Below, in pieces: positions 43,480 to 50,195 of a stretch of 64,000 nt of DNA. A model generated the notes under the pieces. The model saw nothing but the letters and a program-made list of their open reading frames with translations. It made no database searches and was not told the origin of the DNA. The position numbers and the translations under genes are program-made. Each line of letters opens with the position of its first letter. Within the stretch, counting starts at the first letter, position 1. Origin of the DNA: Guillardia theta CCMP2712 (lineage: Eukaryota > Protista > Cryptophyta); contig NW_005434637.1 of NCBI RefSeq assembly GCF_000315625.1, positions 246,671 through 310,670 on the forward strand, given 5' to 3'.

Positions 43480-45456
43480 ATGAAGCGACAAGTCGCGAGC
43501 GGTGGGGACGAGGAGGAGAGTTTTGCTGCTGCCAAACGATTCAGACGACTGCAACCCAGCGATGAAGGCTTCTGGAACTCTGTCAAGATATGTTACGGTC
43601 ACTCAGACGCGGTGTCAAGCATCGCATGCTCTCCTATGGGAAACTTGATTGCATCAGGCTCTTGGGACAAGACAGTAAGGATCTGGAACAAAACAAGCCT
43701 CCAAGAGATATGCTGCATGAAAGGCCATCTACATCGAGTAACTTGCGTTGCATTTCCCCTAGATTCAACAGAAGAAGTTGTGGCTTCTGCTTCTGAGGAT
43801 GGCACAATCAGAACGTGGGAGGTGAGGAGCGGAAGTGAATTGAGACGTTTCAAGGGGCATACAGGCAACGTCACAAGCATTGCATGGTCTCCCACCTCGG
43901 ATAGGATTGCCTCAGCGTCTGAGGACAAGACAGTGAGGATATGGGAGGTAAGCAGTGGGAAGGAAATCAAGATTTGTCGAGGACATCAAGACAAAATTAC
44001 AAGCCTGGCATGGTCGCCCGATGGGACAATGATTGCCACGGGTTCTATGGATTATACAGTGAGGATATGGAGGGAGGACGATGAGAATGAGATCAAATGC
44101 TTTCGAGCAGATGAAGCAGGTCGATGGATCCCAAGAATGGTACCTCTAGCGTGGTTTCTCAACAATGCCGACGGATCCGGCATAAGGAGCGTCGCATGGT
44201 CGACGTGCGGGAAGATGATTGCCTCAGGGTGCTCGGACACGACAATCAGAATATGGGATGTAAATAAAAACAAACAGATCCATTGCTGTGAGGGACACAA
44301 ACGATTCGTTACCAGTGTCGCATGGTCTAAGAATGGAGATCTTGTCTCGAGTTCTGAAGATGGCTCAGTGAGGATATGGCAAAAAAGAAAGAGATTGTTT
44401 TTGTCTTGGCCACAAAATCTCTGCGGTCACAATCTGAATTCTGCTCCTGTGAACAGCGTTGCATGGTCTCCTAATGAACTGAGTATCGTCATGGGCTCCA
44501 GCAACAATACTGTCAGAATCTGGCAGAAAGATTGTTGGCAAGTTGTAAAAAGGTATGAAGTACACAAGAATGAAGTCGCAAGTGTTGCATGGTCCCCAGA
44601 TGGACAGATGATTGCCACTGGATCTGAGGATAAGATGTTGCGGACACATAGTTTTACCAATCCAGACGAGAAAACCCTTTATGAAGGACATGCTGGAAGC
44701 GTCATGACCGTAGCATGGTCTCCTTGTGGAAGCCTCATTGCCTCGGGCTCGGAAGACAAGATCATCAGCTTGTGGAATAGCAAAAGCAGCGACAAAGTCA
44801 GAGACTTGGTGGGACATGAGGAGACGATCACGAGTCTCTCTTGGTCTCCTGATGGGGCAAAGCTTGCGTCAGGGTCCTGGGACACGACTCTCAGGATTTG
44901 GAAGGTCAGCACCGGCAGGAAGGAAAGGTGCTTCAAAGGTCATGCGCATCGCGTGTCGAGTGTCGCTTGGTCTCCGGATGGGAAGACCATCGCCACAGCT
45001 TCATGGGACAAGACTGTGAGGATCTGGGAGGTCAGCAGCGGAAAGTCTAGCCAACACTGTTGCAGTAAAACTGCTGCCTTGACAAGCGTCGCTTGGTCAC
45101 CAGACGGGAAGATGATTGTAACTTTGTCTGGTGAAGGAATTGTGGCTGTGTGGAAGGTAAGCAGCTGGGCTTCACAAAACTGTTTCATTCCAGACAGGAC
45201 GGCTGTGGTGACAAGCGTTGCTTGGTCACCAGATGGAAGTACGATCGCTTGTGGGTGTGAGAATGGTCAGGTCACCATGTTAGATGTGATGATGGACCCC
45301 TGGACTAATGCCACAGTGACGACTCTGAAGCTTGATAGAAGCAAGAGAGCAAAGATCGTGCACTTGGCCTGGTCAAGTGATGCGTGTTATGTCGCTTGTG
45401 GGTCAGATGACGGCACCATCACCATCATTCGGGACGCAGCCTCAGTCCTCAAGTGA
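43480..45456 (+). CDS. WD40-repeat protein (about 14 repeats), intronless
   Basis: 658-aa ORF with repeated GH...VxSVAWSPDG..IASGS.DKTVRIW. Confidence 0.93.
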   Translation: MKRQVASGGDEEESFAAAKRFRRLQPSDEGFWNSVKICYGHSDAVSSIACSPMGNLIASGSWDKTVRIWNKTSLQEICCMKGHLHRVTCVAFPLDSTEEVVASASEDGTIRTWEVRSGSELRRFKGHTGNVTSIAWSPTSDRIASASEDKTVRIWEVSSGKEIKICRGHQDKITSLAWSPDGTMIATGSMDYTVRIWREDDENEIKCFRADEAGRWIPRMVPLAWFLNNADGSGIRSVAWSTCGKMIASGCSDTTIRIWDVNKNKQIHCCEGHKRFVTSVAWSKNGDLVSSSEDGSVRIWQKRKRLFLSWPQNLCGHNLNSAPVNSVAWSPNELSIVMGSSNNTVRIWQKDCWQVVKRYEVHKNEVASVAWSPDGQMIATGSEDKMLRTHSFTNPDEKTLYEGHAGSVMTVAWSPCGSLIASGSEDKIISLWNSKSSDKVRDLVGHEETITSLSWSPDGAKLASGSWDTTLRIWKVSTGRKERCFKGHAHRVSSVAWSPDGKTIATASWDKTVRIWEVSSGKSSQHCCSKTAALTSVAWSPDGKMIVTLSGEGIVAVWKVSSWASQNCFIPDRTAVVTSVAWSPDGSTIACGCENGQVTMLDVMMDPWTNATVTTLKLDRSKRAKIVHLAWSSDACYVACGSDDGTITIIRDAASVLK

Positions 45457-45594
45457 AACAGCCGCGGCAAAGCCCATCTGAAAACGGATCACTGAGCCCG
45501 ATTGGGTGGTCGAGATGGTGAACCGTTGTAGTAGTGAGGGCGGCTGCCACCGTGACCCGCAGCCTGGCACAGTGGCGCGGCAGAGTCACGTCAA

Positions 45595-47240
45595 TCAATG
45601 ATGGAACTCCGAGTGACTGCCGTCACCGTTCCAGTGTAGTAGGAATAAACTTTCACTGCATATCATCATGGTAGTATACATGTTTTGGAACCGATCTTGA
45701 CCAGCTCTTGGCAGTCGTTCCGAAGTTCCACCACCTCGCCCGGTTGTGGCAGGCCATGGGGCCGGCTGGGCAAGCATCTCATCGAGTCCTTGCGGCTACT
45801 CAATTGCTGTATGAAGAAGTACAGTCCGTGTCGTCTCTGTGGAGGGAGACAGGTCAAGGTCAGCCCGTCGACGAGAATCGCAAGCGATCAAGTTACCTCT
45901 CTTCGCGCAGACTCGAGTCGGGCGATGGCTGCGAAAGTATGTCATGCAGTCACCGCAGACAGCCGATCGTAACCTCGTAGTCTCCATCATGGGTTGACAT
46001 GGACAAGTCTTCATGGCGGCCTGCCATCGCTCTCCCACCTCCAAGACTTCGGCACCTGCCTTGAGTGAGTGCATGCGCGTTCGCCAGCTGCATACACACC
46101 CGTGATGCCCTTTGCTCTTGTGGGCTGCGCAGAAGAACAGGCCGCATTTCTTGCACTGATACCTCTCCATCTTCCTTATGAACCAGTTCCTGCAGGTGTC
46201 AACGTCCAGTTATTGTTGAGCAGGCGCGCAACAACTGTCTGTACTTGCTGAAGAGCTTGTTGCAGTAATTGCACCTTTTCCTGATATTCGACCCGTGTGC
46301 TGCTGAACAAACATTCATCAGGATGTCTTTTTGGGGGAGAAAGAAAAAATCCGCAGGATTTCAACTCACATGCTGAAAATTCTTCAATCGAAGTTGGCTG
46401 TATTTCCCTCTCTGTCTCTTGCATGGATTGTCTAACAATCTTCTTTGCGGTCGCATGATCAAGAGTGATCGGAGCTCCTGCTGTGCCATCGGCATGCTGC
46501 TTCGGAATCTGAGCTTGAGCTTGTCTCCCAGTCTCGTTCGTTGGCCTTGTGCTGGATTGCGATCTTGCTGCTGGGCGCAGAGGATCAGGAAACAAAGAAT
46601 AGCTCCATTTCGTCCTTACAATCCGTCCTCGATGGTTGGTCTTTCGATCTCTTCATGCCATTCCCCTGTTGAGAATTCTCAATAGTTTGCTGAAATAACA
46701 TGATGCTGAGGTACCGATTGCTGCACACAACCTCTTGCAGCTGCACCACCAGTAGAATTGGTATGGTACGGTCCCTTCACAGTCATTCAGCGAACCGCAA
46801 ACACTCTCTCACTGTAACACCTCGTCCGAATCTTCGAAGCAATCTTCGAAGTCGTCAGCCAATGCTGAGTCGCTGTGGCTCTTCAGTAGTGATTCTACAA
46901 TCAAGAAACATTCAGCAACCTTCAGATCCCACAGTCTGATGTCACCTTTGATTGATGGTGGAAATGTAGCACACTTGTTCGCTTGTTCTCCTTGAACCCC
47001 AGCGAGCGCTGATAGCGCTTGCATGATTTCTGCTCTCTTGGCTTCCATGTTTGCCTTTCGAACTTTACTGCTGTCCGACCTCAAATTTTGAAGGGATGTG
47101 TGCGATTTTGACTTGGTCGGTCCATTTGCTTTCTTTGACGCAGTACCGCTGGCGTTCTCATTTGACTGCGACTGGACCAAGTTCGGCACTCTTATCTTTT
47201 TCACCATCTTCCCAACTTGCAACCTTGCATTCAGAGTTCC
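45595..47240 (-). CDS. region ending in an AN1-like zinc finger; probable cytosolic tail of the upstream STIM-like gene, or a separate gene
   Basis: YQCKKCGLFFCAAHKSKGHHGC. The first ORF opens right after an AG acceptor at 47241, in frame with the upstream donor at 47441. Confidence 0.5.
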
Positions 47241-47441
47241 CTAGCACCCAAATATATCAATGCAAGGAGTTTGTTGAAAAACACTTCAAATATGAAGAGG
47301 AAGAACGCGCACCGAAACGTGAGTGTGACACTTACAAACTAATATATAGACGATTAGGAAAGAATTTGGGGTGTGCGGGGTTGGGGACTGAGAAACAAGA
47401 GGGAAGGACAAACACGCTTGACAACAGAAATTGGGGCATAC

Positions 47442-49300
47442 TTCCTGCAAGGTCCGAATCGTATCATTGAGGATACCCAAGCGAAATGCACCAAAGGCGA
47501 GTGGCGCCAAGAAGCCAAAAAACGACAAGATGAGGTTCAAAACCTGGCAATCGTTATCGAAGCTGCAGGTGAAAGTGAGAAAAATTACCTGCCAGAGATC
47601 GAAGCTCAGCAACGTTGACCCCCAGTATTTCCATCCTCCAAACAGCCCGGTCCATTTGTTCTGGACTCAACAGCTTCAGCAAGATGAGCAACCCATTGGG
47701 ACGCTACCGTGTCTGAGAAGCAACCAGAGTCTAGAATCTCACGGCAGATAGCCTGTCAACCAAGATAGTTCGGGAGAGAATTGAATGCCAACAAGTAAAC
47801 CTCCGTCAGGTGAGCTCGCTTCATGTCGCTCTTAATCCCTAGGATGGTATGAAGCAATCTACAGACTGTCACGTCTGGAGCTCACAGTCAGCATCACAGC
47901 ACCTCGGGTTCTGTATTCCGATGCTCCACAGTGTCAGGCCTCGAACATCATGTTTCTTGAAAGCCGGTATGTAGTCCTTTGATAAGAGGATTACCGGAGT
48001 ATCTTTCAACACTCATTGTTACCTCCATGTTTGTTGGGACACACTTGTCATCCGAAAGCCATTTGATAAGTTCTTCATTGCTCAGTTTGCTCAGTTTGCT
48101 TCGCCAAAAACGAGTCTTCAGCTCCCACATCTCTTGTCTTGTGATCTACAAGGCCATTTCAGCCCCTTCCAGCTCGTGGAAGCAACGAGTTGTGCCGTAC
48201 CTGTCCATTTCTATCCGGATCCAAACAATGAAATGCTTCTAGAACTCCCACACCTCCTCGAGCCTGCAAAAATTTCATTCCAAGTCTCATGCTTATTCCC
48301 ATACCTGCTGACGAACAAATTCCTCTTCACTGACTTGACCATCATCGTTCTGGTCCTGACCCCCTTCAAACAAATGAGCTTTGAATCTACCAACACCACT
48401 TCTCTACCTTCGAAGAATGATCTCGAATCGACATGTTTGATAGCATCTTCCAATTTTTCTGCACAAAGCACATTCACGTTGAACACCGAGTCAGCAGATT
48501 GTACCTTCAGTCTTGTTCTCCCTAGTAGTCGGAGCCATCAAATCAGCTGAAACAGGAGGTCCCAAACAACCAAGTCCTTCAATTTCCCTGTAGAGAACCA
48601 TCCGGGAGACATCAAAACTTCCGGAAAAGGAGACCCTGGCACTACCTGCAGATAGCCTGCACTAGAGTTCGCCTGACCACTGGGTTCCCGATCTTGAGCT
48701 CGTTCTTGAGGAGCCGAGGGCTGCGGACTCCATACTCCCACAGGGACAATCCATTCAGCCCTGCATGCTCGTTCAACGCAAGTTCGTGTCATCGAGAAGA
48801 AGCACCTGCTTGCTTGAACTTGTTCGCATACTTGCTCATGTCAGTGGGCACGCACTTGGGATACATGAGCCAGTCTAGAACTTCTTCAGAGTTCAGCTGG
48901 CAACCATTGGTCAGCGCCATGGGAGGACGGGAAACAATCTGCAACACACTGACCTGCGAGAGTCTGCTCCGGTAGAATCGCTTCTTCAGAGCGTTCTGCT
49001 CCTCCTTCGTCACATACCCATTCATGTCGCCGTCAAGACAGGCAAAGGCTGAATCCGAACCCCCCCTGCTCCCATCAACAAACTCTTGCCTCGTGACCCT
49101 GTGTGTCATGGTAAATATCCCAGGTCGTTGAGTTACAAAGGAACATGGTTTCACCTTCCATCCCTGTTCTTGTCTCTGATTTCAAAATCATCCAAAGGGA
49201 TGTTCTCTTCGTCATCAGAGGCAAACACGACCAAAACAAAATGAAGGCAAAGCCCCAGCAGTGCGAAAAATCGGGTTCGAAATCTCGATTGTGACTTCAT
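47442..49300 (-). CDS. STIM-like protein: signal peptide, two (EF-hand pair + SAM) modules, TM helix
   Basis: Manual splicing of about 12 short exons: signal FFALLGLCLHFVLVVFA; EF loops DKNRDGRVTRQE, DGDMNGYVTKEE, DQNDDGQVSEEE, DPDRNGQITRQE; SAM1 LNSEEVLDWL...KYANKFKQAGLNGLSL...LKIGNPVVRRTL; SAM2 LSNEELIKWL...DYIPAFKKHDVRGLTL...LGIKSDMKRAHL; TM VLNLILSFFGFLAPLAFGAF. Confidence 0.78.
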
Positions 49301-49859
49301 CTCTGCTCTGATGAAAGTTGGACTGATTCTTTTCTGCAGACACCTTCACCTGATTGACATGTGACTAGCGATGGAGAACCTTTTCACACGCCGAAAATCA
49401 TTGATCCATGGCCCAATTCAGTACAAATCCCTCTCATGCACATCATCAGATGTTATGTTCTGAATATTGTCGCTCGTCCCTTTCATTGCAAGGTGTCCGC
49501 GTTGCTCCTATCCCTCATCTCACCTCCTCGTCCTCAGACGGTCGATAAAAACCGCATGCTGATACTGCACAATCCTTAGTTGGCAATAGAAATTCAAAAT
49601 TTTCGCAAGTACCTCGAAATTGTGAGTCTAAAAATGTGGATAACCCCAAGTTAGTTTTCATATTTGCGCCAACTCTAAAGAAATGGATATAGCGATCCCC
49701 TCATCATTCCCCTTGGAATAGAACCCCACCCCCGACGCAATCATCAAGGGGGTAGTCAACTTTATCCGGTCAGGAAGTCCTTCATTCGTGGGGTACCGGA
49801 GGGTGATTGTAGCAATTATAAGGGGTCATCAGGTGAATAAATCCGGGGGTGGGGGTGGC

Positions 49860-50195
49860 TGGGGTTCAGAGCTGGGACCTGTCGCCGAGTCACTGCAATA
49901 CTGAGTCATACTCAGCCGGGCCCCGGGCCGTGAGTACCGTACCGGGGCCGCTAGTACACTCCGGCGGCCCGCCGCCCCGGCGGGCCGCCAACCACACGGT
50001 AGCTGATACTGGTGACCAGGCTAGTTAGGAACTTCCATGCATTCTGCCGAGACGGGCTGTTGAGAGTCGCCGTCGAGTCGATCGGACCGTCGGATCGGAC
50101 AGGGCGGCCGTACTGAGCCTGCACTGCGGCAGTCCGGCGGACCCCGCGGAGTACGGTAGCTAGTAGACACTGTTTTTTGCAGGCTCGCGTCAGTG
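49860..50195. repeat. GC-rich intergenic island
   Basis: CCGGGCCCCGGGCC and GGCGGGCCGCC motifs, similar in composition to 4921-5400 and 51810-52200. Confidence 0.5.

Follow-up and report, generated by a model that had tools for sequence, protein, structure and literature searches.

A tandem STIM-type EF-SAM module in a predicted single-pass membrane protein of the cryptophyte Guillardia theta

Introduction

Animal STIM proteins carry a single luminal EF-SAM module with one canonical and one hidden EF-hand, and they gate Orai through cytosolic CAD/SOAR coiled coils. Reviews describe STIM as confined to animals and choanoflagellates and Orai as far wider, occurring in green algae, early land plants, brown algae and diatoms, where a different sensor has been postulated (PMC11085791, section 2.12; PMC8318260). 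With Orai present and STIM missing, these lineages raise the question of how they sense luminal Ca2+. Here we analyze a gene on the minus strand of a 64,000-nucleotide stretch of the cryptophyte Guillardia theta CCMP2712 (NCBI RefSeq assembly GCF_000315625.1, contig NW_005434637.1, positions 246,671 to 310,670; hereafter the window, in whose numbering positions are given). The gene encodes two EF-SAM modules in tandem, and the solved structures closest to both modules are those of STIM EF-SAM.

The protein arranges STIM-type sensor modules into a new architecture and is not a STIM orthologue. We read it as a secretory-pathway membrane protein of type I, in which the tandem EF-SAM array would serve as a luminal or exoplasmic Ca2+ sensor with a STIM-like mechanism and an output other than SOAR, and we put the probability of this reading at about 0.6. 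An initial annotation of the window, made from its letters alone, had proposed a STIM-like Ca2+ sensor at the same place.

Results

A spliced and transcribed nuclear gene

The region 45595-49300 contains many short minus-strand open reading frame (ORF) fragments and no long ORF. Transcript contigs from runs X1, X2 and X8, which belong to three studies, each cover 45712-49500 as a single spliced molecule and run from 45712 to past 49500. The 15 exon joints listed in these contigs all read CT..AC on the plus strand, corresponding to GT..AG on the minus strand. Eight further joints were worked out from the contig gap lengths, GT-AG ends and the open frame. The resulting chain of 24 exons and 23 GT-AG introns on the minus strand totals 2490 nt, which is the exact span of the X8 contig, and leads from a start ATG at 49300 to a stop codon at 45800-45802. 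One intron measures 201 nt (47241-47441, minus strand) and the other 22 are 41-67 nt long. The 201-nt intron lies just past the exons coding for the predicted transmembrane helix and is removed in all three transcript contigs; reads gave no sign of an alternative isoform there. Runs containing 0.65-0.94 of the words look genomic, and those containing 0.40-0.43 fit an exon-only copy.

An exhaustive phmmer search with the 41-residue translation of exon 9 led to a 733-residue G. theta protein from MMETSP (P0001; UniRef A0A7S4UGX8_GUITH), whose public name, "EF-hand domain-containing protein", is purely automatic. The derived model of 733 residues agrees with it letter for letter. Another protein returned by the exon-9 query, P0004 (682 residues; E 2e-16, reached via ten short stretches), is a repetitive low-complexity false positive and no relative. 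The spliced transcripts and the identical public protein together settle the gene model and establish that this nuclear gene of G. theta is expressed.

The exons join by GT-AG splicing as the initial annotation had foreseen, and the contigs of the three studies bear this out. Its estimate of about 12 micro-exons was right about the fragmentation and too low in number, since the gene has 14 exons through the transmembrane part and 24 overall. Likewise, its list of domains was accurate as far as the transmembrane helix, at which it ended; beyond this helix the gene codes for a low-complexity tail and then an AN1-like zinc finger.

Two EF-SAM modules in series

From the N- to the C-terminus, the protein consists of a predicted signal peptide, a first EF-EF-SAM module, a linker, a second EF-EF-SAM module, a Trp/Gly motif, a predicted transmembrane helix, the low-complexity tail and the AN1-like finger (Table 1). 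Up to the transmembrane helix, this order is the one originally proposed. The modules arose by duplication and are 47% identical to each other over 136 residues (E 1e-42). In module 1, the EF loops occupy residues 43-54 and 71-82 and the SAM domain spans residues ~99-164, with a CREIEGLGCLGPP motif at the C-terminal end of the module. The corresponding elements of module 2 are loops at residues 214-225 and 245-256 and a SAM domain at ~273-338. All four loops are canonical, as had been claimed, and match the pattern D-x-[DN]-x-[DN]-G-x-[VI]-x-x-x-E.

Pfam recognized both domain types, the EF-hand of CL0220 and the SAM domain of PF07647/PF00536, above cut-off: EF-hand_1 with 49 bits (cut-off 25.4; E 2.5e-13), EF-hand_7 with 44.3 bits (cut-off 30) and SAM_2 with 22 bits (cut-off 20.5). 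Separate exon translations, which are too short for such a search, gave only sub-threshold hints of EF-hand and zf-AN1. AlphaFold 2 (AF2) models of both modules contain EF helix-loop-helix pairs with short beta bridges. The SAM fold is confirmed by VIA-align, which superposes 65-75 residues on the SAM domains of SARM1, CNK2, DGK-delta, PHC3 and Shank with Z 7.8-8.5 and a root-mean-square deviation (rmsd) of 1.2-2.6 Å. Each module contains four conserved cysteines, in the motifs F-x-C-L-D, K-C-V-P, A-I-C-R-E-I and G-C-L. As judged from these motifs, the cysteines would be compatible with an oxidizing lumen.

The modules match STIM EF-SAM in fold and domain order

To our knowledge, an EF-hand plus SAM module has otherwise been solved only in animal STIM. 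The AF2 models (module 1, pLDDT 87.2 and pTM 0.80; module 2, pLDDT 85.5 and pTM 0.82) were searched separately with Foldseek against 350,542 PDB chains. For both modules, ranks 1-3 were taken by the three solved STIM EF-SAM structures: 6pw7 from Caenorhabditis elegans STIM (E 1.8e-5 for module 1 and 1.3e-5 for module 2), 2l5y from STIM2 (2.3e-3 and 1.6e-3) and 2k60 from STIM1 (7.5e-3 and 4.1e-3). When module 2 was compared exhaustively with 48,161 PDB representatives in VIA-align, 6pw7 was the sole chain with Z of at least 8 (Z 8.6 over 134 residues); the other rows cover either the SAM half alone (Z up to 8.0) or the EF half alone (Z up to 6.1). In the ESM Atlas, clusters of STIM1 and STIM2 rank first for both modules, the best having TM-scores of 0.59 and 0.58 with module 1 and of 0.56 and 0.56 with module 2, at an rmsd of 3.4-3.8 Å over 110-117 residues. 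The initial annotation had made its case depend on the modules aligning with STIM EF-SAM better than with generic EF-hand plus SAM proteins. STIM EF-SAM outranked every other solved structure in Foldseek and, for module 2, in VIA-align, and STIM clusters led in the Atlas.

Sequence comparison points the same way for the SAM half. A profile covering the helix that leaves the second EF-hand through to the end of the SAM domain, compared with 177,635 PDB sequences, returned STIM2 first (E 7.8e-5) and then STIM1 (2.1e-3). Its alignment to STIM is ungapped from the helix leaving the second EF-hand into the first SAM helix, and so passes through the EF-to-SAM junction whose resemblance to STIM1 the initial annotation had pointed out. 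With the single sequence as query, phmmer aligned the whole of module 2 with 6pw7 (E 0.0038). In domain order and overall fold the tandem modules follow STIM EF-SAM, with which they are probably homologous.

The Atlas search also returned an oomycete cluster of about 565 residues, automatically named 'Calmodulin', with fibronectin type III (fn3) and SAM_2 domains. It aligned with TM-scores of 0.53 (module 1) and 0.56 (module 2) over 111-116 residues, a whole-module match about equal to that of STIM. These models suggest that stramenopiles, too, may have EF-SAM-like units, in a different architecture. The oomycete proteins would be another non-animal example of such a unit matched over its whole length; they differ in carrying fibronectin type III domains, and a link by sequence to the cryptophyte family was not obtained. 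A chlorophyte SAM/EF-hand cluster found by an Atlas feature search (score 0.85) is weak and falls below the level of more than a lead.

Predicted topology and membrane segment

Only two segments are hydrophobic, residues 7-27 and 368-399, and Kyte-Doolittle windows exceed 1.4 only at 7-13 and 368-383. The first segment belongs to a predicted signal peptide with a basic n-region, a hydrophobic core and V-F-A ahead of an acidic mature N-terminus; relatives P0012, P0014, P0019 and P0024 also begin with hydrophobic leaders. The second segment is followed by a basic flank. From these features we predict a type I single-pass topology with the EF-SAM array on the luminal or exoplasmic side. Between module 2 and the membrane lies a motif in which W354, G356, F358, G359, G360, W361, W364 and G365 are invariant columns in the alignment of all full-length relatives. 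It may form an interfacial helix that couples the last SAM domain to the membrane. A two-helix transmembrane hairpin for residues 354-399 was considered and rejected, because the first half of this stretch, rich in W, G, K, Y, S and D, lies below transmembrane hydropathy and is instead the conserved interfacial motif. Plastid or periplastid targeting was likewise rejected against the background of the bipartite signals of cryptophytes, as the strongly acidic mature N-terminus is unlike a transit peptide.

The same topology would suit a plasma-membrane protein with its array facing the medium. Such a protein would report external Ca2+ or depend on it, rather than on an internal store, and might act in adhesion or in organizing the cell surface or periplast. 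A signal peptide, a single transmembrane segment and a C-terminus that lacks KKxx or HDEL-type retrieval signals would fit such a location; the conserved cysteines and the single N-x-T sequon suit any exoplasmic site, and the family occurs in marine (Guillardia, Hanusia) and freshwater (Cryptomonas curvata) cryptophytes. However, the ~10 mM Ca2+ of seawater would fill four canonical loops constantly and leave nothing to sense. We consider this explanation improbable. Part of STIM1 itself resides at the cell surface, and the models cannot be told apart by location alone. We keep to a sensor in the secretory pathway, whose compartment may be the endoplasmic reticulum (ER) or another.

The cytosolic tail lacks SOAR and ends in an AN1-like finger

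Residues 396-645, which comprise the predicted cytosolic tail, gave no match in the PDB at E≤10, and the low-complexity part of the tail had none in Pfam either. No coiled coil was detected in the tail, and the Pfam SOAR/CAD model (PF16533) gave no match in P0001 at E≤1. The Pfam and PDB searches thus uphold the earlier remark that no CAD/SOAR is recognizable.

Beyond the low-complexity stretch, cysteines and histidines follow the pattern C-x2-C-x17-C-x2-C-x4-C-x2-H-x5-H-x-C. Compared with the AN1 signature C-x2-C-x(9-12)-C-x(1-2)-C-x4-C-x2-H-x5-H-x-C, all eight ligands are present in order and the first spacer alone, at 17, is off. The Pfam match to zf-AN1 (PF01428) is sub-threshold (E 0.037; 14.6 bits against a cut-off of 27.9), and 6 of the 20 weak PDB matches are AN1 fingers (1wys, 7yab, 1x4v, 1x4w, 5ij4 and 1wfh; E 0.03-2.7). 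The finger is identical in P0015, an orthologue with 84% identity overall.

The pattern resembles that of AN1 proteins such as ZFAND1, ZFAND2B/AIRAPL and yeast Cuz1. ZFAND proteins are tied to p97/Cdc48 and the proteasome, and the AN1 domain binds that machinery elsewhere. In contrast to ZFAND proteins, the G. theta protein has the longer first spacer of 17, lacks a ubiquitin-interacting motif and a ubiquitin-like domain, and has its AN1-like finger attached to a membrane protein with a predicted luminal sensor.

A cryptophyte family with two to four modules

All the relatives found with two to four modules in tandem come from cryptophytes or environmental contigs. They include P0015 (736 residues, from MMETSP), a Hanusia phi protein, a Cryptomonas curvata fragment and many fragments on environmental contigs. 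A further relative is P0002, an intron-free ORF of 745 residues on two environmental contigs in ENA (L001:432-2669 and L002:262-2499), with four tandem EF-SAM modules, one transmembrane segment and a short acidic tail rich in Glu, Gly and Gln that lacks the zinc finger. The array can therefore expand to four modules, and the finger is not required. In a tree of modules, the module-1 type (support 96/97) and the module-2 type (90/85) each make up a clade of their own that spans different relatives, so the duplication is older than their divergence and was retained. On the aligned sequences, the conserved core of the family is the predicted signal peptide, the EF-SAM array, the juxtamembrane motif and the transmembrane segment, and the tail varies.

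Word-indexed homologue searches with P0001, a family profile and P0002 returned, beyond the cryptophyte and environmental relatives, only a few bacterial EF-hand proteins, and the search with P0002 returned P0002 alone; such searches cannot reach divergence at the level of STIM, so a blank elsewhere is not evidence of absence.

An array of two to four modules with two canonical sites each has a high density of sites, and the tail differs among family members. Both features would fit a membrane-anchored luminal Ca2+ buffer, analogous to CREC proteins, whose tail has no signaling role. Buffering would, however, leave the SAM domains, the invariant Trp/Gly motif and the finger conserved in Guillardia and Hanusia superfluous, and the acidic, low-affinity, high-capacity region typical of store buffers is missing. 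The word depth of the contigs is unremarkable, and such depth reflects expression poorly. We consider a buffer very improbable. CREC proteins themselves (reticulocalbin, calumenin, Cab45) resemble the G. theta protein in having several canonical EF-hands behind a signal peptide in the secretory pathway. They are soluble, however, with six EF-hands, no SAM domain and often an HDEL-type end, whereas the present protein has four EF loops, two SAM domains, a predicted transmembrane anchor and a predicted cytosolic tail, and thus falls outside the CREC family.

Positions of features and neighboring sequence

Table 1. Parts of the tandem EF-SAM gene and their positions in the window.
Feature	Residues	Position	Strand	Basis
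Coding region	733 in all	45800..49300	-	Spliced contigs and match to public protein
Predicted signal peptide	1-27	49220..49300	-	Hydropathy
EF-SAM module 1 (exons 1-5)	33-176	48557..49204	-	Pfam EF-hand and SAM_2, AF2 model, Foldseek, VIA-align, Atlas
Inter-module linker	177-195	48454..48556	-	One N-x-T sequon (NKT, 190-192)
EF-SAM module 2 (exons 6-12)	196-350	47711..48453	-	AF2 model, Foldseek, VIA-align, Atlas
Juxtamembrane motif W-x-G-x-F-G-G-W-x-x-W-G	354-365	47619..47654	-	Family alignment
Predicted single transmembrane helix	within 368-399	47472..47612	-	Hydropathy; basic flank after
Low-complexity, predicted cytosolic tail	400-642	46280..47471	-	PDB and Pfam negatives
AN1-like zinc finger	643-685	46052..46279	-	Cys/His pattern, weak Pfam and PDB matches

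Downstream, an intron-free ORF of 658 residues with WD40 repeats (43480-45456, plus strand) is convergent with the EF-SAM gene and has a 3' untranslated region reaching to ~45599. Its transcript contig (record 2 of X2) ends at ~45599 and the EF-SAM transcript at ~45712, which puts only some 100 nt between the two 3' ends. At 45568, 2 nt of the window are missing from the X2 contig. On the other side of the gene, some 500 nt 5' of the start codon, positions 49800-50000 are GC-rich with palindromic runs of the CCCGGG/GGCCGC type. This stretch lies outside the mapped 5' end of the EF-SAM transcript.

Discussion

The protein shares with STIM1, STIM2 and C. elegans STIM-1 a predicted signal peptide, an EF-hand pair placed directly before a five-helix SAM domain, and a single predicted transmembrane helix. 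In contrast to STIM, which has a single module with one canonical and one hidden EF-hand, it has two modules (four in P0002) with canonical loops at both sites of each EF pair, and each module carries four conserved cysteines. Neither CC1-CC3 nor SOAR/CAD nor a polybasic end was found; the C-terminus is acidic, and the tail contains the AN1-like finger. With two modules, canonical loops throughout and no coiled coil or SOAR, the protein should not be filed as a member of the STIM family. Since the Orai-activating tail of STIM is missing, it is a candidate luminal Ca2+ sensor from outside the animals whose output would differ from that of STIM.

Several observations weigh against a STIM-like sensor. 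Sequence identity to STIM EF-SAM is 15-21% and the E-values are marginal; in the search with the junction and SAM profile, the SAM domain of SAMD12 (2.2e-3) is level with STIM1. A profile of the whole module ranks neurocalcin and calmodulin first in the PDB, with STIM outside the best 60. Calmodulin and NCS proteins swamp this profile because the loops are canonical, and the result is therefore uninformative on the SAM domain or the junction. The STIM-specific Pfam model PF25578 (EF-hand_STIM1) gave no match at E≤10 in P0001 and 11 modules, with the presence of this model in the searched Pfam copy unconfirmed. In structure, the modules match the solved STIM domains only moderately (TM-score 0.40-0.52, rmsd 5.8-6.8 Å), with packing that is loosely alike, and SAM-only structures score nearly equal Z. 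AF2 was trained on data that included the STIM structures, which may bias the packing of the domains. The tail is not conserved across the family, as P0002 has a short acidic tail and no finger. Finally, the conserved cysteines might staple the EF pair to the SAM domain, and canonical loops, whose Kd for Ca2+ is typically in the micromolar range, might always be full in a store or in seawater and bind too tightly to report store levels.

A rival explanation is convergence, in which an ordinary canonical EF-hand pair and a SAM domain would have been joined in cryptophytes independently of STIM. The product would be analogous to STIM EF-SAM and might be a Ca2+-dependent luminal or extracellular scaffold, or a polymerizer acting through SAM self-association, and not a store sensor. 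For the EF half, generic EF-hand proteins are far better matches than STIM, SAM-only matches (SARM1, CNK2, DGK-delta, polyhomeotic) reach a Z equal to that of STIM, and the SAMD12 result and the missing STIM-specific Pfam match fit in as well. EF-hand and SAM are both promiscuous domains, and the oomycete fn3 and EF-SAM-like cluster is the same combination in another setting. Convergence does not readily explain why STIM2 is the best PDB sequence match of the SAM-half profile, with the EF-to-SAM junction helix ungapped, why all three STIM EF-SAM entries hold ranks 1-3 for both modules, or why the predicted topology is that of STIM, with a signal peptide, a luminal module and one transmembrane helix directly after it. 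We consider an independent origin unlikely.

A STIM-type sensor stays the preferred reading. The interpretation in the initial annotation is partly upheld, by the transcripts, the structural match and the SAM and junction profile, although the similarity is moderate and the whole-module profile favors ordinary EF-hand proteins. Of its proposal of an ER or secretory-lumen Ca2+ sensor of tandem design with another output, the tandem architecture and the lack of SOAR stand as observed; Ca2+ sensing, the ER location and the output are features that we infer. A wider scenario, in which the EF-SAM sensor predates animals and choanoflagellates and cryptophytes have kept a homologous module in two to four copies as their sensor of store or luminal Ca2+, with a non-SOAR AN1 output, possibly linked to ubiquitin or p97, is tentative and on balance doubtful.

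By analogy with STIM, the sensor would most likely work as follows. With two canonical loops per module, the array has four predicted Ca2+ sites. Ca2+ occupancy would hold each EF pair packed on its SAM domain as a compact unit, and loss of Ca2+ would alter the conformation of the luminal array or its self-association. The change would then be relayed through the single transmembrane helix to the cytosolic tail. In the Guillardia lineage this tail ends in the AN1-like finger, and the predicted output would differ from the gating of Orai by coiled coils and SOAR.

Our literature search found no paper pairing Orai with Guillardia theta and, among the matches listed, no EF-SAM or STIM-like occurrence alongside cryptophytes, oomycetes or protists. 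A cryptophyte protein with a STIM-type EF-SAM module in predicted STIM topology makes the question of luminal Ca2+ sensing testable. The luminal module of STIM1 has earlier been assayed for Ca2+-dependent unfolding and oligomerization, and the G. theta protein, which lends itself to the same assays, is a concrete candidate for a luminal Ca2+ sensor outside Holozoa. Its tandem design with canonical loops throughout is a natural variant in which to study what sets the cooperativity and affinity of EF-SAM modules. If the modules are homologous to those of STIM, the origin of the sensor would move back beyond Holozoa; if they are convergent, the EF-SAM solution would have arisen twice.

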